This document shows positions 20,920 to 55,400 of a stretch of 64,000 nucleotides of DNA, one piece after another. Each line of letters opens with the position of its first letter. The stretch's first letter is position 1. The notes beneath the pieces were generated by a model that saw only the letters and a list, made by a program, of their open reading frames with translations, made no database searches and was not told where the DNA came from. This DNA is from Chlorokybus atmophyticus. Its lineage: Eukaryota; Plantae; Mesostigma and Chlorokybus algae. Made by a program: the position numbers and the translations under genes. The DNA is taken from assembly GCA_009103225.1 (NCBI GenBank), contig RHPI01002119.1, forward strand, positions 248,001 to 312,000. The letters are read 5' to 3'.

Positions 20920-22011
20920 ATCGGCTATTAGGCATTGTATTGTTTGCCTTTATGTGCTACGTGGAAGTAAAACCCACAAATCTCTTGCTCTGACAATTGG
21001 TGAAATGCGAAAGCACTGGACAAGCACTTGAAGCACTCACAACCAACGAGTGCAGGCTGTGGGTTGACAGACATTTTAACTGTACTTGAGGTTCAGCGCT
21101 GAGCCGCAAGCAAGGACGCTCTGGCAACGCCCGAGCTAGGTTGCGCTTGGCTTCAGCAGCTTTGTCATATGCACACTGCCATGCAGTTCCTACATGTGTA
21201 CAAACCCGTGGGCACTCAAGCAGAGGTGGCTACGGCCGGCCGATCTGCTGCACCCTGCTCTGCGCCAAGCCCGTCCTCCTCTTGGACCAGGCCAGTGGTG
21301 ACCCAATAGCGGGAGGTTCTGGCCAAGTCCCAGACACTCAAGCAGGCTCCCAGCTGTTTCCCAGAAACAGCTGGGAGCCTGCTTGTTCCTTGCTCAAGCT
21401 GTAAGTAACCGTGAATTAGGCACAGCAGGCGACGCAGTGGAGCTCCTCTTCACTCCTGCCGCCGCCCCTGCCTCCGCATGCGCCACGTCTGTGCACGCTC
21501 TTCCCCTCCCTCTGCTCAGTACCGAGTTATGGCGGGAAAGCACTGGAGTCAGCCCTTGATATACGGGTCTTGCTTATGATGCAGTCCCTGCCAGTCAATG
21601 ATCTGCCCGGGCCTTTCACGCGGGCCGCTTGTTCTTATGTGCATGCGCAATTTGCCAACATGCCCATAGTGCCCGCACTGTGGAGTTATTCTTGCAAATT
21701 GTCTTCATTGTGCGTCACCTGCAATGTTAAAGTACCAACAATTGCTGAGGTACTTGTTGTAAACAACAAACACTTGTTGCATTTAATGTCAAAATGATTA
21801 AATGAATCATTATGATATGCCTTACTCATTGTTTACCCAAAACTAATGAGTGTGGTTTACATAAGCCGCCAATTGCTCAAGTAAAGATGCTTATCGCAAC
21901 AACAGCATGTTACGCAATTCTTATAGTACAAACTAGTAGATATATCATATAAAGATGAATTTAAGATTCATTTTTACGACATGCAGTCAACACGTCTTAC
22001 CTTTTGCCTAC

Positions 22012-22520
22012 TGTCACGAATTGGGATAAATTGTGACAGACTTCACTCATGGTAGTGTCTTTTACTACCATAGCCTAGTGGTCATGCCCCAATCCTTACA
22101 TTGGTAACGGAGCTTGACGTCTCAGGTTCAATTCCCGTAGGGAACTGAGGCAGATCCAAGGCAAAAAACAACAACATTTTGGGCGGCTTGCCCTAGGCTG
22201 GGCGCGGGATCACGACCTGCGCGCCGCGCCAGTTCAACCTAAGGCCGCGTGAGCGGTCGCGTTGCGATGGCAGGTCGCGCGGTGAGGATGGCCGTTGGGT
22301 CGGCCAGGACCGTTCGCGGGCCGGATCCAACAGGCCGCGGGCAGACCAATCGTGGTACGGTCGCGAACACGGCGACGTGGGCTAGTGCCTCATTGGATTA
22401 TGAGGAACTCATGGGTTGAATTGGGGAGGAATGTCACGAATTGGAATAAATTGTGACAGACTTCACTCATGGTAGTGTCTTTTACTACCATAGCCTAGTG
22501 GTCAGGCCCCAATTGTTACA
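22012..22520 (+). mobile_element. TRIM-like miniature LTR element, copy 1 (509 bp): LTR-A' 22012-22100, PBS2 from 22102, int2, PPT to 22431, LTR-A 22432-22520
   Basis: 89-bp direct repeats TGTCAC...TTACA. TGGTAACGGAGC follows the 5' LTR and GGGGAGGAA precedes the 3' LTR. Non-coding. Flanks CCTAC and GGTAT do not match each other. Confidence 0.9.
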
Positions 22521-23243
22521 GGTATTGGAGGAGTCATCTCCGCAAGGCCTGCGCACAACAGCAGCGCCTGCGGCAGCAGTCAATGCCGGATGATTTTGCA
22601 ATTGCTTATGGACGTCAATGTCCCGCAACCGTTGAAACTCCTAACATACACACAACCATTGGTGCAAAGCAAGACATTGACGACCACACACAGCAGGCTT
22701 GATCAGGATGGTGTCCTGTGGTCAGTGCCCTAATCCTAATGCAGCTGCATACCGTAGAGACAATGCACCTATGTTGAATGCCATGGTTGCTGACAGAATC
22801 ACTGGTTGTACCTCGATGGGGTCTTGAACGGTGACACCCGTAGCTTCTATCACATCGCTTGTTTGTAAACTGCGTGCACCAGCCCTTTGGCGTTGAACCT
22901 TGCTGGCGTTGGGGAAGGGAAAGTTTAAGCACCTGCGCAAGAGATCTCGCTCTCGATCTAGATGATTAGCAATGATGTGGGAGACCTTTGACATGATTAG
23001 CTCTGTGGTAGATTAGTAACACGCTTGCACACCTGCCCCACTCGCAAATGGGGATCCATGTCCAAAAATGCCTACAAGTTGTGATATGTGCAGAAACGGA
23101 CGACATGGGTAATGTTTTCGCCGTCGACAGCTGCACGCTCGACAGCCACGACGAGCTTCCAATGTGTCTATAAGGTTGCTGCGGCAGCTGCACAAGCGGC
23201 TTGTCCGATTTTTTTCCAATATCCCAATTACTGATGTGCAAGA
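22521..23243 (-). pseudogene. Degenerate reading frame, 5' half of a locus split by the TRIM insertion and inversion (continues at 33851+)
   Basis: Long frame with sparse stops (SKVSHIIANHLDRERDLLRR...EFQRLRDIDVHKQLQNHPALTAAAGAAVVRRPCGDDSSNT) that stays open when joined through the TSD to 33856 onward (SATARAMEAMCLPGALAEDLRCQMKLYLMLVALP). Family unknown. Confidence 0.4.
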
Positions 23244-24290: not shown

Positions 24291-27200
24291 CCATGTGTAC
24301 GCAAAAGACCGTAACATGTGCTGCTGGGCTACCTAAGTGACGTGAGCAGAAGAATGGTGGTGTGGTGACAAGTTGCGTGCAAATTGAACTCTTTCGCTTA
24401 TAGATATGCTTTGCTTTATGGACACATGAGCACATGTGAGCGCGTGTGGATAAAAAAAGTGCAACAGCTCATCCGGCATGTTACATAGCAACGGCTTGAC
24501 TAGCAACGCTATTGAAGTCAAGCAAGTCGAGGCAAAGATCAACAATGCCGTAGCAGTGATAACATTGTATAATATTAGCATTTAGACTTGACGGTATTCT
24601 TTTAATTAATAAGCATTTGATGCTTTGCAGGACATTCGCAAGCAAACGTGTTTACGCTATCGCGCATAGGCCTAATTTCAATATTCTTGTGAATTGGGTT
24701 TTTAGGTATACTGTGACAGCACAACCATGTCTAATGTAGTATTCGACTATTTGGCATCGAGTGTCTTTCACTTGTGGCCCACCGCGTGCTTACCGGAATA
24801 TTACATATTTGTAAGCACGCCATTTCAAGCGACCATCATTATTGTTTCGTGTTATAATCACAATGCTACCGTGTATGTTATTGTATAATATACATATGCA
24901 TATATGATGTATGTTGATCATGCACTTGTTGCGATTTCTAGCTGTTCATGCATAAGTTGACTTACTTGCTGTGTAAAGTATCTTGATTGCAATCAAGATG
25001 ATGCATTTGCAGCGCCCGTAAAAGTTTAGTAACTTACGGGACAAAACATACAAAATATGCCGTGGATGTTATTGAGTCACTGCGTTTTTAGGGCCCAGGT
25101 TTATAGGCTTACGGGTTATGAGCTGGATGGGAAGGTGACGCTGTATGGGAAGTCGCCGGAGCTTAACGGCCATAAGGGCCGAGTTTTCAAAGCCGTCACC
25201 ACGATCAACCCAATATACCGGTTGAAACAAGCATTGATGCCCATAAAAATCTACTTGAAAAGTTCAAATCAGTTCAGCTGCTGGAGGAGCACAATTCTGG
25301 TGCTCCAGGATTTGCAACGAACCGAGGAGGAACCGCTCCTCTTGAGAATCAGTTGTTGGGTGAGAGATCCTCCTCGCCAATGCCCTTCTCAAGGCCGCCT
25401 TGAAGAGGGCCGTACATGTCCAGGACATCTATGGCACATTGTCACATGCGGTGTAGTGAACGAGTGCATGGGTAATGAGTTTTGAGGGATGTTATGTACC
25501 TAATTATGCAACATTTGTTAAAGGGCATGTGGCTCCTCCTATGGTAGGCGACTTTTGCTGTCATAGCCCAGTAAGTGAGGCGCCGGTGTTGCACATTACG
25601 TCATGGCATACATGTTTTTTCGCCTTAGCTACCCTCGTGTTGAAGATGTCAGTTACTGCGGACAACAAAGCTGAAAGCATTGTGGTAGTACATAAACCAT
25701 GATGCCAGCGACGCGTACGGTATATTTTGTCCGTGAATCTGATGCAAGACGCACACTCAAGCACACTCAAGCACAGTCCACCATGCATGCACTCAAGCAC
25801 ACAAGCATGCACAGAAGCAGCACAAGGCAATCTATTACCATAGGGGCACGTAAGTGCTCTAACTAAATGAATGCAACGGGGTAGTGAGGAGCAGGCAGAG
25901 TTGTTGGGCAAGTAGACCTGGGCACAGACGCCAGAGGCCCACGATGAGAACGTGGAGGATGTGGAAGTAGTACAGCAGCAACAGGCAGCAGGGCGAGGGC
26001 GGGTGTGCAATGTGATGCTGTGCTGCTGAATGGTGGATGGCTCCGCCACTTTGCTGCTCGGCCGGTCTTGGTCTTGCCTTGTAAGACCTACAGTTCGCAG
26101 CCTGCAGCCGATCAATCGGCTGCAGGCTGTCACAGGACTTACAAGAAACTGCAACGGTTGGATTACAACAGAATGAGGGGTGTTGGCAATCAGTCCCGCA
26201 CCGTCATGCAGGCATGTACAGTCATGTGAGAGCCAACATGCACAGTCATGCACCGTCATGCAGGCATGTACAGTCATGTGAGCGAGCATGCACATGCACA
26301 TGCAGCATGCACATGCATAGTCATGCACAGTCATGCATTCATGTAGGCATGCTTGGTAAGGTATGTTGGTCATCGCAAAGCGCAATACACTATCCAATGA
26401 CATCCGTGATGAGGCAAGGAAGGCCGGAGTCTCGAACCTTCATTATCATCGACATGCAAGTGTTGCTGTTAGAGCTGCCACCCTGTCTAACTGCCGGAGT
26501 TATCATAATAGCCAATGAGAAGTGCTGTATTGTGTGAAGGGTACTCATTGTGGCAGCGTACTGCGTCGCATATATTCGCATAAATCGCACTTGTATCAGT
26601 GTCACGTCAACACCGTTGACATGGCACTGATGCGTTTACATGATGGTACCATGTGAACGTTGTAGTGTATTAGCGCGGGCGTGTATAGCACACAGTCGAA
26701 TGTTGGTATAAGGTGCATAGGCTTTCCAGCGGTACCGTTGCAAGATTGATAAGCACTTAAGCACTCAACAAGCACACAAGCACTTACGTGCTTGTGTGCT
26801 TGTTGGCGTGATGCACGCAATCAGCAGACAGTGCATGTGCGTGGTGTAGTGAGACAGGTGGCATGCAAAGCATGCTGAACGTGTGCAAAGCACTTTGCAG
26901 ATCTTGTACACAAAGGGGTGCATACCTTGTGTGCCGTACATTGTACAATGCATCTTAGACAGCATGCAGCTGGTGCATGACAGTTACCTGCAGAAAGTGT
27001 CCAATCACATACCCACTCAACACAACCTCAGCATTGCATATGTTGTACACATGCATGACATGTTTATTCACCAATCTGAGCGCATAATCCAATCTTGAAG
27101 ACCAATATCTACATGCGATGTCCTGACTTCTTGCTACATTATCTCATGATTTCATCACATTTGCCTTGCATACAAGTTTCCTGCTTTTATTAGGTTTGTC

Positions 27201-32008: not shown

Positions 32009-32359
32009 TGATGTGCTGAAGAGACAGCGTAGATTAGCTAGTAGCGATGGTCAATTACTACTCACATGGTTTGCATATGCTGTCATAGCCATGTTTTGTA
32101 TAATGCACTTTGTCGCGCTACACTCATTGTAACCCCAATGTCCCAAGTTTACCCACGTTTGCTTACATAAGTCCGGCCACCGTAATAAGGCCCCGGTTGT
32201 TTTGCACAGTCCCTCTATTCAAATCGAGGCAAAAGTGCTACTCGGTTGATATTTTCCCATGCAAGGAGAGTGTGTTACATGCTTCCCTTTGTAAAGCTTA
32301 ACGAGTAAAGGCCGGATCCCGTAGGCGCGGGAGGCAGAAGGGAAGGGGGGGGGGGGGGG

Positions 32360-32458
32360 NNNNNNNNNNNNNNNNNNNNNNNNNNNNNNNNNNNNNNNNN
32401 NNNNNNNNNNNNNNNNNNNNNNNNNNNNNNNNNNNNNNNNNNNNNNNNNNNNNNNNNN
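32360..32458. other. Assembly gap (N run); others at about 34330-34522 and 51375-51618
   Basis: Runs of n in the sequence. Confidence 0.99.
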
Positions 32459-32787
32459 GGGCATGAGTCGTATTTATGCAAGTGGCCTCTTACATACTAT
32501 AGGGACACGATCTGCGCATTGAAAACAATGATAGCAAATCGAACTAAGATCCGATCAATACCAAAGGGGGAATTTGCCTCAACGTCAACGCATTAATGTT
32601 GTTGCTTTGCCAGTCGCGGCCATCGTTACAATAAACGATATCAAAACAAATGGCCCATTGCAGGCAGGATAAACACTTCGTGTCCCTACAGTGTCATGTT
32701 ATCAATATGAACATACTGAGGCTATGGTCGTGAATGTATTGCATGAAACATCGACAAATAACAATGTAAGCATCACTTGAACGTAGG

Positions 32788-33850
32788 TGTAACAATTGGG
32801 GCCTGACCACTAGGCTATGGTAGTAAAAGACACTACCATAAGTGAAGTCTGTCACAATTTATCCCAATTCATAACATTCCTCCCCATAACATTCCTCCCC
32901 TTTAACCCATAAGTTCCTCATAATCCAATGAGGCACTAGCCCACGTCGCCATGTTCGCGACCGTACCACGATCGGTCTGCCCGCGGCCTATTGGATTCGG
33001 CCCGCGAACGGTCCTGGCCGACCCAACGGCCATCCTCACCGCGCGACCTGCCATCGCAGCGCGACCGCTCACGCGGCCTTAGGTTGAACTGGCTCGGCGC
33101 GCAGATCGTGATCCCGCGCCCAGCCTAGGGCAAGCCGCCCCAAATGTTGTTATTTTTTGCCTTAGATCTGCCTCAGTCCCCCACGGGAATTGAAACTGAC
33201 GTCAAGCTCCGTTACCAATGTAAGGAGAGGGGGTGCTCCCTCCTCCATTTAATCCCCTACCCCAACACCACCACCAGCCACGACGCCCACGACGCCGCCG
33301 CCAGGGGGAACTGCCGAAGCAGAAGATCTTCTGGCTATGGCGGTCGCTGCGTTAGCAGCGCCGCCATGCGGCTGATATCGACATGAGACTCATGTCTCAT
33401 GTCGATATCAGTGTTACAGATAAGTAACACTACATTAGGGCCTTAACATAAGTTAACGGCCCTAATATGGCTTAATAGGCTGTATAATCCCGTTGGGACC
33501 CTTATTTAATCCTAAATAAAGGCGGGGAACCTCTATGGAGGTAGCACACCGTTACATTCCCCCCCACTTAGGTTTCAATGTCCTCATTGAAGGGGTAGCA
33601 AAGCCCCACCACGAGTAAAGAAACGAAAGTAGTAAGAAAATCAGGGCCGAAGCGGTAAAGATGTCTGCCAGCACCCTTCCGCCGCGTGTGGACGCATTAC
33701 TCCAGTACCCGCGAAGAATCTCCTGGCAGTTGGTAAGATTCCTTTCGGGCTTCGATACCAATGTAACAATTGGGGCCTGACCACTAGGCTATGGTAGTAA
33801 AAGACACTACCATGAGTGAAGTCTGACACAATTTATCCCAATTCGTGACA
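32788..33850 (-). mobile_element. Miniature LTR element, copy 2 (1063 bp), A-B-A layout: LTR-A 33850-33762, PBS1, int1, PPT1, LTR-B 33556-33219, PBS2, int2, PPT2, LTR-A 32876-32788
   Basis: Two 89-bp LTR-A copies nearly identical to copy 1. Central 338-bp segment has TGTAA...TTACA termini, is preceded by GGGGGGGAA and is followed by TGGTAACGGAGC. PBS1 is TGGTATCGAAGC. int2 is shared with copy 1 in inverted orientation. Confidence 0.9.
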
Positions 33851-35600
33851 ATACCTCAGCAACAGCACGCGCAATGGAGGCGATGTGCCTGCCTGGTGCA
33901 CTTGCTGAGGATCTACGCTGCCAGATGAAGTTGTACCTAATGCTTGTGGCTTTACCTTGATTATTTCAAGAAGGCCATGTCAATGCGGAACTGGCGTCTC
34001 GCAGCTGTACTTTTTGGCTTATGCAAGTGCTGTAGGCAGCCACAAATGCGTTGTACAAAAAAACACCTTCTCTACATCCGATCGCAAGCTTTGAAGGAAG
34101 CTCATGAAACTTCCCGCTTGTTACCTCTGCACCGGTCCAACGCAGAGCACTACAGTGACTCTCATACAGACCTCAAAGGCAGCGCAAAGCGGTCCGCGTC
34201 CTCCTGGCTATGTCATGCTGTGGTTCTGAAGGCAGGTGCCTACATTGTGGCATGGCATCTCATCGACCGAATTTGCTACCAATACATGTGTACCTGTTCA
34301 CTGCAGCAGACCTGAGCCCAAACTAGCCCNNNNNNNNNNNNNNNNNNNNNNNNNNNNNNNNNNNNNNNNNNNNNNNNNNNNNNNNNNNNNNNNNNNNNNN
34401 NNNNNNNNNNNNNNNNNNNNNNNNNNNNNNNNNNNNNNNNNNNNNNNNNNNNNNNNNNNNNNNNNNNNNNNNNNNNNNNNNNNNNNNNNNNNNNNNNNNN
34501 NNNNNNNNNNNNNNNNNNNNNNCTACCCCCCCCTGGACAATGATATGCAGGAGCTGCCCGTGTCTGAACAGGCAACAAGAGGAGACGAGCAACAGCAGTA
34601 ACTGGCTTGCTGCTGAAAATCCAGGTCTGGTATGTCGCGTGCTAGTAATTCAAGTAGCCAACACATGCTGCACTGTACGGGTGTTTTACGTAGGGGTGAC
34701 ACGGTGCTTGTGCTTTGCCAGATGGAAGCATGTTTGACGACTTCAAGGATTCCTTGGAGTAGATGAGGTAGCCTGCCTCCTGAACACGGGTTTTGTTGCT
34801 CAATATGCGACAGTCTGGGCAGCTGTACAATGACACGTGCGCTGCGTTCTCACCTCAAGCATGTGACTGGCTGCTTGTGCGGCAACTTGAGAGTGTTGCT
34901 GATCAGTGCTTGTATAGCCAGCGTTGTTGGTTGCGCTCTGTGGCACGTGTGCCTTCAGCACAAAGACTCTCTTGCGCCGTCTGGGAATAGCCATTGGGTG
35001 TGGAAGCTATTCCCAGACAGCGCAAGACTCTGTTTGGAGCAAATGCTGGCTTTGCTGGTGTGCACCGTTGTAGCGGTAGAGTATATGTAAGTTGTCATGA
35101 CTGTACTTAGCTGGCGCCATACATGGCGCCAGCTGCAGTATGTGTGTGGCACAAGCTCTCTGCTGCAGCAATCTAGACATCGCGGAAAACATTGCGCTTC
35201 TCAATAAACTCCTGACATACTATGTATGTGTGCATGAGTCATACATAGCGCCAGATGCTCACTAGTACACCACTCCTGTCTACACGAGTCCACGAACACG
35301 ACACCCGCCCATAGCTCCAACCATAGTCGCCCTGCCATGCATTGGCTGTCACCTGCGTTGTTGTTGTCATTGTCTCACACAGCAGCCACCAAGTGGCCAA
35401 CAGTATGATTGCTGCATGCAACATCCCAACATAAGCAACTGACAAAGGTGTACATGCAAGACAAGCAAAGACGCAATATTTATGGCACAGTATCAGTTAG
35501 CACAGTCACCTGACCAGAACAGCAGTTTCATTCCTGCGCGCAGCCCATGCTCAACAGACCCATCCTAAACCTGTGTCGCCTAGCCTGAACGCAGCAGCTC

Positions 35601-38000
35601 CTATCGCCTGGCTGAAACCCGTAGCTTGATACCTCCTTTGGGGGCCTGTACAAAGCCGCTCATCTCGGGCTTCACGCCAAACCCTGGCACGGGACTGAAT
35701 TGGAAGTTTTGCAGCAGCACTGCAAGTATGATGGAGCTCTCTGTGAGTGCAAAACGCTGGCCAGGGCAGTTCCTTGTGCCTCCACTGAAGGCGATGTTGC
35801 CATATGATGCGCGCGCCTCAGCCGTCGAGAAGCGCTCTGGCTTGAACTCATCAGCATCTGGGCCCCAGTTCTCCTTGGAACGCCCTATACACCAAATGGG
35901 AAGCCTGCAGCATCCACCACAACGTGTCAACAACGCACCGCAACATCAGCACTTGCGCAGCACCTGCTGTATCTGACCGCCTGCATTGCAACATACCATA
36001 GCTGGGTGCCTGGTGGTAATGTAACACCACCTATTGTTAGCGTCTTCACGGCTGTGCGTGTGGTAAGTGGAGCAGGGGGGAACAACCTGAGCGCTTCGAG
36101 GAAGATCTGCAGCACAAAGAAAGGGTGTATCACTGATACCAACAACCACAATTGCAAGGCATTGCTTCACTGACCGCTGGCGGCTGCATTGCTGTACCTG
36201 CCGAGTGTATGACAAGCGTGGTAAATCCTCGTACTTTGGTCGGGAGGACCCTAGCACCTCATCAACTTCCTTGTGAGCTCGAGCTTGTATGTGTGGGTTG
36301 GTCGCGAGCAGGTACAGGGTATAGGCTAGTCCTATGCTTGTCGTGTCATACCTACAGCAGCAGAGCATCTGTGTCATGCCAACACACAGCAACCGGCAAA
36401 ATTGAAAGCAGGCAGTAATGAGCACGTACCCACCGAACCACATAGTCATTATGTTGTCGCTAAGGATTGCATCCGTCAGCACGAAACCTTGCACGACGCC
36501 ATTCTCATCAATGTCTGGCTCGTCGGCTGCCAGTAACAACCTGAAAAGGTGTTGGCAGGAGCTCCACAGGCAGCACGCGTACATGGTATGTTGTATGCTA
36601 GTAGAAAGCATTTCACTACTTAGCACCTTGTTAAGAAGTCGTCATGCACTTCTTCTTTGCATGAGATGGCAGCGCGGCGCTTCTGAATCATCTGAGCAAT
36701 TGCAGATCGCACAACCTTCTTAGCCTGACATTGCAGCAACACTGTCAGGCGCAGCACGTCTAACCCTATAGAAAAAATGCAATCGTCACCTTTGCATGCT
36801 CCCAGTTGGCCTGTGTAGGTGGCCAGTAGTACCAATTGAGAGGATTCATAGCATCTGTGAAAGTCCTTTTGCTGACTTCACTCAGCAAGAATTCAAAACT
36901 GGTCACAATTGGGCTCAACGCTGCTCCCGCAGACATGCTCTTCACAGATTCAAAGTGATGACCAAAGGCTGTAATCCTACAGCAACTGGACATCAGGTGC
37001 TCATGTTGAACAAGGGTGAATAAAGCAGTACAGACGCGAAGCACCATACCCGATGATATCCATCGTCACATTCCGCAGGGCATTGTGAACTTCCAACTCT
37101 ACACTTGGTTCTCCTTCCACCTTCAAAACCTTTTGAAAATGCTGGACCAAGTCTAGGCTGCACGAGTAAATATCATCGGCCCACTTTGAAGTATCCGCTA
37201 CACCAAAGGCCCGCATCATCAACCTGGGAACCACCAAGCGAAAGATGCTATTGCTGCTGTCGGGCGTGCCAAGCAAAACTTGTAAGGCTTTTCCAAAATT
37301 ATGCTCCCCATATGAAACAGCGCAGGCCCCAATGAGGTGCAACACAGTGCAAGTGTATTTGAACCTGACCTTCTGACACCTTTCCAGTCGTCTCCAGTGA
37401 GCTGAGCCAACGAATGGGCACCCAAGAAAGCTATACCATGCCTCGCAAGGAAAGGGATTGGTTTTCGGTACGTGGAAGACTGCAGTACTTCCTTGACCTA
37501 AGCAGTGCAGCACTTGAGCTTCAACATGCCTGACTCGCAATGTACACTACATGCTACCAGCTGGCTTGCACGCAGAAGCATGCGGCATACCACACTGCTG
37601 CAATGCACCCACCTGTTCTGTTCTTTGCACAACCACCACTTGCGTCGCAGACAACCAGAGGCTAGACAGGCCGGTCTTTGGGTCTGCAATCTTGCAACTG
37701 TCCTCCAGGCCCTGCACCCAACAAGTCACATGACTACAACTAGAAACCACTGAAGATGACACATGACAAGCGTACATGCTCAGTAGCAGCCTTTTTCCGA
37801 GTCAGGCACTACAACAGCAAGTTACAGAAGTTTACCTTCAAGAAATCTGAGAAATACTGCATGTTGCCGGCGGGAAACTGTACAGGTCTGTGAAGCAACG
37901 GCAGCTTGCGGGAGACTGTTTGCCAGAATGACCAGTAAAAGGCACCCAGAGCCCCTACGACGGCGGCCAGGAGCACTCCCAACACCACTGCCGCCGCCAT
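35601..38000 (-). CDS. Cytochrome P450, multi-exon; family not assigned
   Basis: N-terminal anchor MAAAVVLGVLLAAVVGALGAFYW; I-helix MWFGGYDTTS; K-helix EALR; FKPERF; heme motif FSGGTRNCPGQRFA. Confidence 0.95.
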
Positions 38001-44063: not shown

Positions 44064-46216
44064 CTAGAAATCATCGTCATCTGAACTATCCGACTCGCTG
44101 CTACTCCCCGAGCTCCCGCTCCCGCTGCTGCTGCTTCCGCTGGTATACGAGCTGCTTCCGCTTGAGCTGGAGGACTCATTTCCGCCTGCAAGCTCCTCTC
44201 GCCGCCCTTTATTATTCGTGGCCCCTGCACCGTTGGTATGCTCCATGCGCAGCCGTGCCGCGAGGTTGTCGTCCTCGCCCGCGTCGAGGATGTCCACGTC
44301 CTCCTCCTCGATCTCCTCCACCACAACCTCCTCCTCCTCCGTGGCGTCCTGAAGGGCGTTGTTCTGGTCATGCTTGTCCTTATGTTGGTCGCTGTCATCG
44401 TCATCATCCTCGCTGTCATCCCCAAAAAGGTCCCTCATCTTCACGTCCTCGTGCACAGGTGCGGCAGGCTTCTTCTTCTTGTTGCTGTGGTTGTTATTAC
44501 CATTGTTGCTGCTGTTGTTTCGCGCGGATGCCACAGGCGGTGGCCTCTTGCCACTCGTGCTCGGGACAGCAGTGTTGGTGTTGTTACCCGAGCGCGCAGC
44601 ATTGCCACTGTTGGGTTTCTTCTTTCCGCCAGATTGTTGCTGCTGTTGTTGCTGTACTTGTTGTTGCTCGGGTGTGGCAATTGGCTGCGGTGTTGTGGCC
44701 GGCGACTTCGCTTGCGAATCCTCCTGCGCGGCTGCCGCACCCGCAGCCGATTCAACATCTCGCCTTGTTGCTTGCGGTTCAGCCACACGCACGTGGCGAA
44801 GCCCCTTCACCGCGTCCGTCAAACGTTCCAAACGCAGGGTTTCGCCGTCGAAGATCAACACGCAGTCGAGGTCCCTGTACGCCTCATGGTAGCCCTGTAC
44901 GACGTCGCGAAAGAATGTTCAGCAAAAGTGCAATGCAATGTTGTGTGAAGCATCATGGCGGTATGCGAGTGCCATGTGTGAGCAATACACTACTGTGAGC
45001 TTTCTAGATCACCGTGCAACTGTGGATGAAGTCTATCTCAAACGTACCGATATACGCTCTCGTAAGCTGGTGTTTGTAAGCTCGCATGCAGCTGATGTGT
45101 GCGGAAGGGCTGAGATTGCACACAGAACTGTGCTCGCCAACATAACCACATCGACAACCATAAACAACACCACCAGTACTGCATAGGTGCATGCGTGCGT
45201 GCGTGTATTTGCATGTGTGGGTTTGACCGCACGCACACGCACACGCTAATGCTCGCACGCTTACATGCCACTCACCTGGAATGTGACACGCGGTTTCTCA
45301 GGCTCCTTGTTACAGAACTCCACCGCCACCTTGCTTTGCTGATCCGATGTGGTCCCCTTTTCTCCCCCCTCATTGCCGCCATTCCCTTTCTCCGCCCCGT
45401 CCGATGCTTTGCGTCGCAGCGTCCCGGGCTTCGCGCCATTGGCCGATGCGGGCTTGAAATCATCTGCGTGGGGAAGGCAAGTGCGTGTGGGTGCATATGA
45501 GTTGGGGTGTTGTGCTTATGAAGATTGCAGCTTGGTTGAAGCTTAGGATAGGGTTCTTGGGGTTTGGCGATTGCGTGTGCGCGTGTGCGCATGCGCGTGT
45601 GCTTGTGTGCATGTGTGCGTGCGCAGATGTATGCATACGTGTGAGCATGTGCAATGGCTCGTGTGTGCGCGTGTGTGAGCATGCGTGCATGTGCGTGCAT
45701 GTCCGTGTGCGCATGTGTCCGACAAGTAATGTTAGTATCTAGGGAACTTGCGAGCATTTTTGCAAGTACACGTTCAGGCGATCTGAGAACACATGCCATC
45801 ACTTCAATCAGAGCAGGAAAGCTGACGAAAATTCCTTGTACCAGGACATTCATAGATAAATAATGTCTCCAGTATACCACACGAACAATTGTGTCAAAGT
45901 CAGCAAACTGTACAGCCCTTGGAGAAAACTACTCTCAAACTCCAAACAATGCTGACTCATAATGATGCAAACCTGAATCAATCTTGCATTGGGTTTGTTA
46001 TACGGACAGAAGACAGACTCAACAGCTGACAATTAGGGTTTGATGCTCCACATATAGAGCACTGCTCCAAACACCAACTGCGCAAGACCCATCCATGATC
46101 TGCTTACATCTCAGCGTGAACAGCCTCGCGCTGGACGTCCCGCCGAACGTCTCACCCAGCGTCACCGGGTACTCCACGCCGGGCCTCGGAGGAGGCGCCG
46201 TCGCCGCCGCCATCAT
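44064..46216 (-). CDS. EAF: ELL-associated factor (EAF1/2-like), 3 exons
   Basis: EYPVTLGETF..LFTLR|YDFKPAS..VAVEF..|..DCVLIFDGETLRLERL, followed by an acidic, Ser-rich tail. Confidence 0.85.
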
Positions 46217-49400: not shown

Positions 49401-52400
49401 GCTCGAGTGCGAGCCAACGCTGTGCGCGCTTGGGCCGGCACACGTGGCTGTTGGTGTCAATAACCAGGTGCGGTTGCATGCATGTGCGTGCGTGTACACG
49501 CGCGTGTTTACATGTGTCCGTGCGTGTGACCTATTACCCACACGGCGCACATGCACACATTGCAACCAGGTGTGGTTTTACCGCACGGATCGCGATGTTC
49601 CGAAAGAACACTTGCTGGTGTGCCAGCAGGACTATCCCAACAACATCGAGCAGGTGCGCGCAGCAACTTCTCAATCACTGAACCATCGTTGCATGTGTTG
49701 GTGTAACCTTTACGATACTGTGGTCAGGTGTGTCTCAGCGAGCACTGGGCAGCCGTCTACTTCTCCGGCAGAATCTCCTTACACACAATCGAACCCAACC
49801 AACACAGTGGTAACACACACATGCACATACGTGCACCCACGCACGCACCCACCCACCCACCCACTCACCCACAACCACTCTTCTCAGAGTCGCGTACCTT
49901 CCCCGAGGTGGTTGACACCGACCACCCCGCGGACATCACCTCGCTTGCCATGACGGACCACTTCCTTATCTACGGGACGCGGCGGGGGGTGTTGAGGTAC
50001 TGGTACCACGCTGGCGGTGAAGACGGCGACAACTGCGTGGTGAACGAGTACAGGCATACGGGTGGGGAGGGGAGGGGTGGGGAGGGGAGTGGGATTGTGA
50101 GGGTGTGGCCGAATGCGACGGGGACGAGAGTGGTGTTCACGGACGAGCAGATGAACACGTACCTGTACAACCCTGTCAACGATCAGGTGCATAAGCATCA
50201 CAACGACAATATTTACCAATGGCAGCACACTTGCCAAGTAGCACCTGCAATCATGTGCACGCGAGCGCGTGTACGTGCGAATTTCTCTGCGTGCGTGCGC
50301 ATGTGTGCGTGACCACGTGCGCACGCACACGTGCGTGTGACAGCTCAGTATCGGTTGCTCTAGTCATTGTTTCACCTCGTCACTTACACCACCTCCCTCT
50401 CCCCCTCCCAGCTCGTCCCTCTCCCCTCCCTCCCCCCCTCCCTCCCCTCCACCGTCCTCTGGGACTCTTACGACAGCTCCCACTCCACCACCTTCCTCGT
50501 CTGCTCCTCCACCTCATCCCAAACCTACACATACACGGGCGTATCATCCACCGGTCCCACCCTCACTCCCATCTCAACCCCACACCCTTTACCCGCCCCG
50601 GGAGCGAAAGGAGTGCTGTGTTACAACGGACACGTCACGTGGCAGACCAACACGGGGGGATTGGTGGAGACGGTGATGCCCAGCCACACCGCGCTGCAGG
50701 AGGATGACAACAACAACAACAGTGTGAAGCAGCAGCAGGTGAAGTTCAGTCAGAGTCTGGCGCTGGGGAGGCTGAGAGAGGCGTGGGAGGCAGCGCTGGC
50801 GATCAAGAACCAAGAGGTGGGTGTTGGATGGTTGAGGGCATGCGCAGATGCATGCAAGTCTTTTTGTGTGTATGTCTGCGCGCGTGTGTGTACATACGCA
50901 TACCTACTTGAAATCAAGTATGTAGACGTGAACAAGTGTGCAACTATCTGTGCACGTTCATGTGTGTTGATGTGTGTGCACGTGCTGAACATGCCCTTCT
51001 TGACCTATACCTTCTCCCCCAGACCTGGAACCTCCTTGGCGAGAAAGCCCTCACCTCCCTCGAGATCGACCTCGCCATACGCGTCTACCGAGCCGCCGGC
51101 AAGGTGAGTACCAAACATCACACACCACCCCTTCCCCAACATACCCACTCTCTCCCCCGCCTCCCTCTCGCAGCCCTCCCTGGTCCAGTCCCTCCTCCTC
51201 CTCTCCTCCACCGAAGACAAGCACTCCCTGGCGGGTCACGTCGCTCTCCTCACAACGTCGGACCACGACGGGGCGCAGGAGATGTTCCTACGGAGCGGGA
51301 GGCCGGGGGAGGCGCTGGAGATGAGGAAGGATCTCATGCAGTGGGAGGAGGTGAGAGGGGAGGGGGATTGCGTGNNNNNNNNNNNNNNNNNNNNNNNNNN
51401 NNNNNNNNNNNNNNNNNNNNNNNNNNNNNNNNNNNNNNNNNNNNNNNNNNNNNNNNNNNNNNNNNNNNNNNNNNNNNNNNNNNNNNNNNNNNNNNNNNNN
51501 NNNNNNNNNNNNNNNNNNNNNNNNNNNNNNNNNNNNNNNNNNNNNNNNNNNNNNNNNNNNNNNNNNNNNNNNNNNNNNNNNNNNNNNNNNNNNNNNNNNN
51601 NNNNNNNNNNNNNNNNNNGGGGGGACCTAGTGTGGGGATGCATGTTTATCGTATGCATGTGCGTGTGTGTCTGTGCGCATGCTTGTGTACAAGTGGGCAT
51701 GGGCGTGTACATGCGTGTTTGCCATTGCTAGCGCGCGTGCTTGGTTGAATGCATACGTAAGACGTGTACGCGTGCATGCTTTATTTAGGCGCCCGTATGC
51801 ACTGTGTCATGCTATGCACACGTGAACTCGCATGTGACTACTACTCAAACATCAAGACCACTCTGCCCCCAGGCCGTCGAGCTCGCTCGCGTCCTCGCCC
51901 CCCGCGAGCTCCCCTCCCTCTCCCTCCGCCTCGCAACGTCCCTCGAGGAGGCCATGGCCACCTCCGGCTCTTCTGGCACAGGGACGGGGCCAGCCGGGGG
52001 GGCCACACCCGCCGCAGCCCTCACCGCGTACGAAGCTGCACTCGCGGTCGCTGACCGTAATGATGAACCGACCGTTGCGGCATGCCAGGTGGGGAGTTGA
52101 TGATGGTTGGGTGTGTGGTGAACATGGTTCAACTTGGGAGATGTATCCTACACGCACATACAATCACACACGCACATTCAGTCGCACACGCGCACGCAAA
52201 CCAACACGCACACGCACACGCACACGCGTAAACGCATGCGTGTAAGCAGATGCATACACGCGCACACATGCACACAATCTCTCTCTCACGCACAGGCGGG
52301 TATCGCGCGGTGTGCGTGTGCTGCGGGAGACATCGCTCGGGGTCGGAGAGTGGCTTTGGCCAGCGAGAGCGCTACATTGGCACGCGAATGCGCCGCGATA

Positions 52401-55400
52401 CTGGAGACCATCGGCCAACTCCAAGTAAGCAGCAGTCAAGGCATTGCTGATGTGTGTGAACTTGCGGAGATGCGCGCGTGCGCATGCGTGCAAGTGTCTT
52501 TGTGTCCGACTGGGTGCGTGCGTGCGTGCGTGCGTGCGCGTGCATGCCTGCATGTGTGACACGTCTCATTGTTGTACCCATCCCTCTCAGGACGCCGCGG
52601 AGCTGTACGAGCGCGCCGGTCAATGGGACCGCGCGGCCGCCATCTACATCCAGACCAAGTCCTTCCACCTCGCGGGCCGCCTGATGGAGAAGATCTCGAC
52701 GCCCAAACTCCACGCGCAGTACGCCAAGGCCAAGGAGGCGGAGAGGAAGTACGAGGAGGCGGTGGTGTCGTATGAGAAGGCTAACGTGAGCGTGGTGTGG
52801 GTGTGGGTGTTGGGGTTCAAAGGCTCACTTGCTTGTCATCTCAGGATTTTGATAGCGTTGTGAGGTTGAATCTGGAGTACCTTCGCAACCCGCAGCGTGC
52901 GTACGCGCTCGTGCGCAAAGTAAGCATGTGCGCGTGTGTGTGCATGACTCGTCTACATGTTGTACGAAGAGCCCTGTGACCACAGTAACAATGTGTGCCT
53001 GTGACAGTACAAGTCGCCGTCATCCGCGGCCGCCGCGGCCAAACACACAGCCGCCACGGGGGAGTACGCCCTCGCTGTGGAGTTTCTCCTCCTCTCCGGC
53101 AGGCACGTTTCTGTTGTTGTTGTTGATGTTGTTGCTGTGGTTGTGAGCGTGTTTTGATTGATGATGCGCGTGTCACAGGCATGCGGAGGCGTGGGAGATG
53201 GCGCAGGCGCACGACCAGGTGGACGCCTACGCCGCATGCGTGCTTAATGACAACAACGACAACGCTGCTGTTGGTGATGGCAGCAATGCACCTGAGGAAT
53301 ATGCCAAGCTTGCAAGGTATGAGATGAGGTTCACGCCCAACATTTCACAAGCACACAGAGCTGCAGAGGAGTCGACAAGACAAGTGTCCCGAACTTCATC
53401 ATAATCAATCATGTGTGCAGATACTATGAGACAAAGTCCAACTTTGCACGCGCGGCGGAGACGTACGAGAGGTGCGGAAACCTCCAGGCAGCCGTGCGGT
53501 TGTATCTCCGGTGCGGTGGCGACCACGTTGACAAGGTACCAAACACCATCCGCACACACACATACACACATACACACAATGCGTGTGCGAGGGGTGTCGG
53601 TCAATTGTGGGATTGAATGAGGTCTCAGGGTGCGACTCGGTCCTAGGACTTACTGGGATGTTTTTTGTAGACATGGTAATTTTCAATTCAACAATTGACG
53701 GTCATAGCAATCTGCATGTGCGTGTGCACTTGTGTGTGCTCGCCAATGCTCAGGTCTGAGCATTGGCGACCACGTGCGTGCGTGCGCGCATGCGAGAGCG
53801 CGTGTGCCTGAGTGCCTTCGAATCAAGACTGATGACTAAGTGGCTGCCAGTTCGCGTGTGTAACAAGCAAGAGTCATATCTACTGAGGCAACACAACACT
53901 CACGCTTACCCTTTGTGTAGGCAATCTCATTGGTGGGAAGCGTGGGCGACCCGGCCCTGGTGTCGTTCGTGGTGGATCACCTGACGTCCGCCGCGGGCGA
54001 CGCCGACAGCAACCCCGGCAGCGGGGCAGAGAAGCACCTATTCAAGCTGCACCTTGCACTCAAAGACTATGGGCGCGCAGCCAACGCCGCCCTCCTCATC
54101 GCAAAACACGAACAGGTGAGACACACGCACATACGCACGCACGCATGCACGCACGCATGCCCCCGCACATTCAACCACACGCATACCAAGCGCGCACGCG
54201 CCCACGTACACGCACGCGCTCATGCACACACCCATCCGTACGCCCGCGCACTCACGCGTTGAGCCAACTTTCCAACAACAGCAGCACTCATCACCTCTTC
54301 ATCTTGCTTTTCAGGACCAAGGCAACTACCGGTCCGCGCATGGCGTGCTCAGAGACTGCGTTTCGGCCCTGCGCGGGACGGACGTCAGCGCGATATCCGC
54401 CAACCTGCTCGATGTCCGTCGCGCGCTGGCACTGCTGCACAGCTACGTCATCGTACGAAGCCTCGCCAAGATAGGTACGGAGTAAAAGTGCGTGCGCCTG
54501 CGTGCGTGCGTGCGTGTGCACGTACATGCGCACAAGCGTGAGCATGCGCGTGCACATGCCAACATGGAGTCTGACCCACAACCAGGTGATCACGTATCCG
54601 GCGCACGTATGTTGATCCGCGTCGCCAATTCCGTGTCTCGTTTCCCCTCCCACGTCGTCTCCATCCTCACCTCTACCGTGATCGAGTGCGCCAAGGCGGG
54701 TCTTCGCCGCACCGCCTTCGAGTACGCGTCCGTGCTGATGCGACCAGAGTACCGCGCGCAGATCAAGGCGGAGCACAGGCAGAAGATAGAGAAGATCGTG
54801 AGGAAGGGAGTAGGGGCGGGAGAGGAAGAGGAGAATGAGAAGGAGACGGCGTGCCCGTTCTGCTCGGGACAAGTGACGGAGACGGCACTAGATTGCCCAC
54901 ATTGCGCCAACACACAGCCCGTAAGCACACACACGCACACATACACACGCACGCGCACGCGCAGGCAGGTGTGTGCACACACTTATACTACTCACTCGCT
55001 TGCACGCACATGCGCATGCACTCGCACTCACACTCACATACGTGAACGTGCACGCACTGATAACATCTGAGGTAGAGTGAGAGTCTGAGAATCTAAGAAC
55101 TGAGAGTCTCGCTGTTGATGCGTGGCGCAGTTTTGCATCGCCACAGGTCGCCACATGACCCTCTCCGACTGGTCGCAATGCCCATCTTGCCAGTTTCCCG
55201 CACTCTACTCGGACTTCATTAAGGTGACATTACCGAACAACAACACCATCACCACCTTATTACTGCTCCCACATGGACCAATAGCAAGCCTCAAGCTCTA
55301 CTCATCATCCTGAGAGTGTGTTTTTCTGTTCACCACACAGGTGTTGTCGTCCGAAGGTGCGTGCCCGATGTGCCAACACGCCGTGGCACCCGCGGATGTG

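Follow-up and report, generated by a model that had tools for sequence, protein, structure and literature searches.

A gene-less LTR retrotransposon of 1,063 bp, with the layout A-int1-B-int2-A, is found in Chlorokybus on the minus strand of positions 32788-33850 of the window, i.e., the whole 64-kb stretch of DNA that was analysed. This A-B-A element, in which two outer copies of one LTR (A) enclose two internal regions and an inner LTR of a different sequence (B), most likely arose once, by the fusion of two families of mini-retrotransposons, rather than representing a new class of mobile element. More specifically, there is about an even chance that it represents a heterologous three-LTR "complex" TRIM (L3I2), which fuses two non-autonomous families of LTR retrotransposons. 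The parts of the element, from its 5' to its 3' end, are:

33762..33850, minus strand: LTR-A, 5' copy, 89 bp, TGTCAC..GTTACA
33781-33791, in the 5' LTR-A: A-box-like motif of the tRNA type, TAGCCTAGTGG
33761: spacer T, followed at 33749-33760 (minus strand) by PBS1, TGGTATCGAAGC
33566..33748, minus strand: int1, 183 bp, non-coding
33557..33565, minus strand: PPT1, GGGGGGGAA, which adjoins the start of LTR-B
33219..33556, minus strand: LTR-B, 338 bp, TGTAAC..CTTACA
33372..33411, no strand: perfect palindrome in the centre of LTR-B, 18+18 nt with a spacer of 4 nt
33218: spacer T, followed at 33206-33217 (minus strand) by PBS2, TGGTAACGGAGC, the same as the PBS of the second element of the window, X
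32901..33205, minus strand: int2, 305 bp, rich in GC and with homology to the internal region of X
33186-33196, in int2: B-box-like motif, GTTTCAATTCC, decayed
32886-32900, minus strand: duplicated unit of 15 bp, GGGGAGGAATGTTAT
32877-32885, minus strand: PPT2, GGGGAGGAA, the working copy, before the 3' LTR-A
32788..32876, minus strand: LTR-A, 3' copy, 89 bp

The LTRs, PBS1 and PBS2, and the PPTs were each found where the initial annotation of this DNA had put them, and its description of a miniature retroelement of the LTR type, in which three LTR-like blocks are accompanied by two complete PBS/PPT sets, was borne out, as was its layout of the internal regions, although the sizes that it gave for these need to be corrected from about 200 to 183 bp (int1) and from about 330 to 305 bp (int2). 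The PBS/PPT set is complete at the outer LTR-A pair, with T plus TGGTATCGAAGC after the 5' copy and GGGGAGGAA before the 3' copy, and the inner LTR-B has PPT1 upstream and T-PBS2 downstream, the internal regions being two in number (int1 and int2). PBS1 and PBS2 each agree at 10 of 12 bases with TGGTATCAGAGC, the plant Met-tRNA PBS, a consensus taken from PMC7215508. The 18-nt combination of LTR end, spacer and PBS, TTACA-T-TGGTAWCGRAGC, occurs three times in the 64 kb, always at LTR ends, for a chance expectation of 0.08, and the combination of PPT and LTR start, GGGGRGGAA-TGT, is confined to LTR starts, save for one match with two mismatches.

Alignments of A with B, and of int1 with int2, score no higher than shuffled sequence, in agreement with the earlier claim that B is unrelated to A. 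The outer LTR-A pair, with its TGT..ACA ends, has 4 mismatches in 89 positions (95.5% alike), the 3' copy carries three private C>T changes, and all the differences among the four LTR-A copies (two here and two in X) are private to single copies. At the junction of int2 and the 3' LTR, two tandem 15-bp GGGGAGGAATGTTAT units occupy positions 32871-32900, the unit consisting of PPT2 plus TGTTAT, the 6 nt with which the 3' LTR begins. This duplication is absent from X and from the contigs of other copies, and, together with the C>T changes, it points to A-B-A being an old, inactive copy.

The longest ORF in the element has 80 aa, and protein searches with its ORFs of 69 and 80 aa (one across int1 and one across int2, PBS2 and B) gave no homologue, while exact-product look-ups of three ORFs in or beside the element gave no match. 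No Rfam family matched the window at the gathering score, the matches obtained for 32459-34329 at E<=5 were all at chance level, and no tRNA gene was found at the element. LTR-B folds into some six near-perfect hairpins in a row, with an MFE of -171 kcal/mol and a z of -9.8 relative to shuffled sequence. Cassandra and the retrozymes are, like A-B-A, small non-coding LTR elements with a PBS of the Met-tRNA type, but they have a functional RNA motif in the LTR (5S rRNA-like or hammerhead), and an identity with either was rejected, given that A-B-A matches no 5S rRNA-like, hammerhead or other Rfam family.

The sole other copy within the 64-kb window is a plain A-int2-A element, here called X, whose position and relationship with the flanks of A-B-A are the following:

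22012..22520, plus strand: X, a plain TRIM, A-T-PBS2-int2-PPT2-A, 509 bp
33851..33855, minus strand: upstream flank of A-B-A, GGTAT, equal to the downstream flank of X
32783..32787, minus strand: downstream flank of A-B-A, CCTAC, equal to the upstream flank of X
Sites without the insertion: these would read ..GCTGAGGTATTGGAGG.. and ..TTTGCCTACGTTCAAG..

X is 92% identical to the right-hand 445 bp of A-B-A, i.e., approximately one base in 12 differs, and it lacks a 543-bp block, PBS1-int1-PPT1-B, which has an 11-nt direct repeat, TTACATTGGTA, at both of its bounds, so that A-B-A is equivalent to X plus this block. There is no direct TSD around A-B-A, and a 5-bp TSD reappears only when its flanks are swapped with those of X. 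Given that the two elements are inverted in relation to one another and have exchanged their flanks, a recombination event between them would have inverted the approximately 10.3 kb that separates them (22007-22525 and 32783-33855). The initial annotation had held that a 5-bp TSD is recoverable, which here depends on the swap of flanks with X, and also that the A-B-A form appears to have inserted as a unit, which does not follow from it, since an outer TSD would survive a later nested insertion and is no proof of the insertion of the whole.

Two parent families can be considered for A-B-A. Family alpha, A-T-PBS2-int2-PPT2-A, is intact as X, and family beta would have the structure B-T-PBS1-int1-PPT1-B, its one trace being a high-depth contig across int1-PPT1-B, which is described below. 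The cis signals common to alpha and beta are the TGTxAC..xTTACA tips, the one-T spacer, the Met-tRNA-like PBS and the GGGGRGGAA PPT, and, given these common signals, the two families probably use one helper element and could be co-packaged. In the window itself, where the longest ORF has 459 aa, there is no sign of an autonomous LTR helper element, as judged by ORF length only.

The fusion is supported by the clean junctions, in which an LTR end leads into T plus PBS and a PPT leads into an LTR start, and by the presence in the same window of the plain alpha element X, which differs by one 543-bp block. It is also supported by the lack of relationship between A and B and between int1 and int2, despite their similar termini and the similarity of their spacers, PBSs and PPTs. 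Such a fusion had been proposed initially as an alternative only, and it is now the reading favoured by the evidence.

A-B-A was probably made by a single template switch of the reverse transcriptase. In this process, the minus-strand DNA would copy the alpha RNA up to PBS2, and would then switch onto the beta RNA at the 11-nt TTACATTGGTA common to both, after which B would be copied, followed by a jump via B's own R region and the copying of PPT1-int1-PBS1. The A-type plus-strand strong-stop DNA would then anneal to PBS1, and the product would be A-PBS1-int1-PPT1-B-PBS2-int2-PPT2-A, with identical outer LTRs that the integrase can use, and with one 5-bp TSD upon its integration. Later decay may account for the C>T changes as well as for the 15-bp duplication, and the flanks may have been exchanged subsequently with the inverted neighbour X.

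Further evidence comes from Logan contigs, of approximately 100-300 nt, which were obtained from two sequencing runs of two studies, and none of which lies on the unique flanks or runs across B; two further runs, X3 and X4, yielded none. All four modules (A, B, int1 and int2) are covered by contigs from two organisms or strains, and their coverage in both runs indicates that each module is repeated. The depth of a contig is not equivalent to copy number, and run X1 is not on record as either DNA or RNA, so that all the depths given here are weak evidence. In run X1, a 108-nt contig spans the junction from int1-PPT1 into B with one mismatch and a depth of 70, which suggests that this junction is common, and a contig with A plus a PBS has a depth of 92. 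In the same run, the junction from A into PBS1-int1 is found in a contig with a depth of 3.9 that is exact over 85 nt, comprising the last 43 nt of A together with PBS1 and int1, and that diverges from the window beyond one end of this match.

One contig contains a junction of the X type, with A followed by T plus TGGTAATGGAGC and then int2, one contig of run X1 has another LTR end followed by a diverged int1, and a junction between the end of B and PBS1 was found in none of the contigs listed. The rough depths (B approximately 50-200, int1 approximately 75, A approximately 100 and int2 approximately 35) are weak evidence that fits a structure in which B flanks int1 and A flanks int2. Equally weakly, the contig depths lean towards separate alpha and beta families with a rare A/int1 junction. 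The X1 contig with the other LTR end and the diverging A/PBS1 contig also raise the possibility that these families are more modular than a simple alpha/beta pair.

Some points count against the fusion. No intact B-int1-B is seen either in the window or among the contigs listed, and the 11-nt identity would be the whole of the basis for the switch. The swapping of flanks is needed to reconstruct the outer TSD, which is not observed as such. The outer LTRs are 95.5% alike, and, as the differences among the LTR-A copies are all private, the original LTR pairs cannot be established. In addition, the assembly appears to be of the short-read type, with the A-B-A locus lying between gaps:

32360..32458, no strand: assembly gap of 99 N, on the left side of the contig island that carries A-B-A
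34330..34522, no strand: assembly gap of 193 N, on the right side of this island

It is unlikely that A-B-A is an assembly artefact, in which a short-read assembler or gap closer would have joined or collapsed reads of different TRIM copies in a common repeat, and the A-int1-B-int2-A path would either not be one locus or would conceal extra units. The element is located on a contig island of 1,871 bp between the two N runs, and the Chlorokybus assembly was produced from short reads by SOAPdenovo (k=85), GapCloser and Pilon (PMC7027972), a build that would favour such an error, assuming that the window belongs to that assembly. The most probable site of a misjoin would be LTR-B, whose length exceeds the k-mer and probably also the reads, and the multi-copy state of all the modules, with no contig of the runs on the unique flanks or spanning B, also leaves room for one. 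On the other hand, each unique flank joins an LTR-A, and these flanks pair with those of X as they would in a real exchange, while X and A-B-A differ by approximately 8%, so that a graph of 85-mers would not confuse them. In each module, there are also positions at which A-B-A departs from all, or from most, of the contigs of the two runs, which makes A-B-A unlike a majority-read fill, and a break inside B would still leave A joined to B in both halves.

A separate 115-nt "inverted repeat" at 32344-32458 and 34420-34534 was considered as a TIR and rejected, as it is merely made up of the two N runs. A further assembly gap, of 244 N, is located at 51375-51618.

Quite unlikely, too, is a nested insertion followed by a deletion, in which a beta TRIM would have inserted into an alpha element already in place, at TTGGT (the spacer T together with bases 1-4 of PBS2), giving B-TTGGTAACGG at its right end, and its 5' LTR-B would then have been deleted between 10-nt repeats, TTACATTGGT. 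The sequence of the right junction, B-TTGGT-AACGGAGC, is precisely the one that a TTGGT target duplication would leave, the extra block is bounded by a direct repeat of 10-11 nt, and the outer TSD of the host element would persist. LTR elements are also commonly subject to nested insertion, and to deletion through illegitimate recombination (PMC11899658; PMC13570524). This history does, however, call for two events, namely an insertion at one exact position in approximately 500 and a base-perfect deletion, and there is no remnant of either the 5' LTR-B or the left TSD copy, while B and int1 are apparently about as decayed as the rest of the element, on a rough estimate. A simple nested solo LTR, which the initial annotation had already dismissed, does not account for B, with PPT1 before it and PBS2 after it.

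It is highly improbable that A-int1-B-int2 is a two-module replicon that propagates as A-B-A and, through priming at the inner PBS2 and PPT1, as B-A-B, with strand transfer to the inner PBS2 spinning off plain A-int2-A monomers. Both PBS/PPT sets are complete, and, under the standard scheme of reverse transcription, priming of an A-to-A transcript at PBS2 and at PPT1 would be expected to yield B-A-B. The exact 85-nt match of the X1 contig with the A end, PBS1 and int1, followed by its divergence, also hints at another locus with this junction. However, one A-B-A and no B-A-B are known, the 64-kb window holds neither a second A-B-A nor any B-A-B, and the contig from A into PBS1 is approximately 20-fold shallower than those from PPT1 into B and with A plus a PBS (3.9 versus 70 and 92). 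Given these depths and a sole other window copy of the plain A-int2-A type, the A-B-A/B-A-B replicon advanced initially is not upheld.

The LTR end of X is relevant in this context. The 5' LTR of X ends in ..AATCCTTACA (22094-22100), B ends in ..CTCTCCTTACA, and the three other A copies (the 3' copy of X and both copies of A-B-A) end in ..AATTGTTACA. The last 8 nt before PBS2 in X, ..TCCTTACA, match the end of B, and the 3' LTR of X has ..TTGTTACA. This B-like end could be a footprint of strand transfer to the inner PBS2 of an A-B-A template, as the replicon would predict, but gene conversion during the recombination of X and A-B-A, at the left edge of their homology, would explain it just as well, and would argue that the exchange is real and that B already stood before PBS2 by that time. 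It could also be a polishing artefact.

The extra block further alters the spacing of a putative split promoter. In X, the A-box-like TAGCCTAGTGG and the B-box-like GGTTCAATTCC (after PBS2) are 54 nt apart, whereas in A-B-A this distance is 595 nt and the B-box-like motif has decayed to GTTTCAATTCC. If these TRIMs use a putative split Pol III promoter of this kind, the A-B-A copy would be crippled, which would also weigh against its propagation as a replicon. Finally, the permuted-LTR layout reported for Gypsy elements of this genome (A-internal-B-A-B) was rejected, given that B is followed by T-PBS2-int2-PPT2-A and that the ends of the element are normal A tips.

The fusion of alpha and beta has close parallels among known elements. 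TRIMs with three to five LTRs, in which the inner LTRs have a PBS and a PPT and the TSDs are kept, are common (PMC4079214; 10.1101/010850; PMC11899658). The tandem TRIMs and multi-LTR Cassandra elements of the L3I2 type (Gao et al., 10.1101/010850; Yin et al. 2014, PMC4079214) resemble A-B-A in having three LTRs and two non-coding internal regions, with the inner LTR between a PPT and a PBS, a total of approximately 1 kb, and a 5-bp TSD that is often kept. In those TRIMs, however, a single family supplies all the LTRs as well as both internal regions, whereas the inner LTR and one internal region of A-B-A are foreign.

The mechanism proposed for A-B-A is also related to that of Sabot and Schulman (2007; PMC1950507), who described a heterodimer of co-packaged RNAs that passes through one round of reverse transcription. 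Their complexes are like A-B-A in having two cores that share an inner LTR, and similar outer LTRs. One TSD surrounds the whole of their complexes, and that of A-B-A is reconstructable only via X and would fit a nested insertion equally well. Their cases are also autonomous Copia elements of one family, in which the switch takes place through homologous R regions, unlike the switch in A-B-A, which would need an 11-nt identity of LTR end and PBS between unrelated LTRs.

Parts of a study of sugar beet (PMC13570524) report chimeric TRIMs with extra LTRs from another TRIM family, together with modules common to several families, which are ascribed to template switching; they do not detail the PBS or PPT at the donated LTR. 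The combination of a foreign inner LTR and a foreign core is also already in print, going by those parts of that study, which concern a flowering-plant host, whereas A-B-A is found in a streptophyte alga. The initial statement that no element like this had been described was therefore too strong, in view of PMC4079214, 10.1101/010850 and PMC1950507, and of those parts of PMC13570524, although no description of such a fusion in streptophyte algae was found in the literature. As exact patterns, LTR-A and the start of LTR-B had no match in metagenome contigs, and LTR-A had none among prokaryote genomes or viral contigs either.

If the fusion is real, two unrelated non-autonomous retrotransposons have been stitched together exactly at their common cis signals, which would mean that the two families rely on one helper element and are packaged together, and would make the shuffling of modules a source of new TRIM families in an early-diverging streptophyte alga. 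In practical terms, A-B-A provides a marker locus with which both template switching and the quality of a short-read assembly can be tested.

With regard to its surroundings, the element lies approximately 1.7 kb past the 3' end of a cytochrome P450 gene, whose exon at 35601-35933 on the minus strand encodes the C-terminal heme-binding part of the protein (Pfam PF00067, E 5e-23). Elsewhere in the window, there are many low-complexity tracts of the (TGCG)n/(TG)n type, such as those at 1053-1174, 45558-45699, 52493-52552 and 54477-54532, and two 40-nt direct repeats, 95% alike and 52 nt apart, are found at 26191-26282 in a spurious Cys/His-rich ORF.
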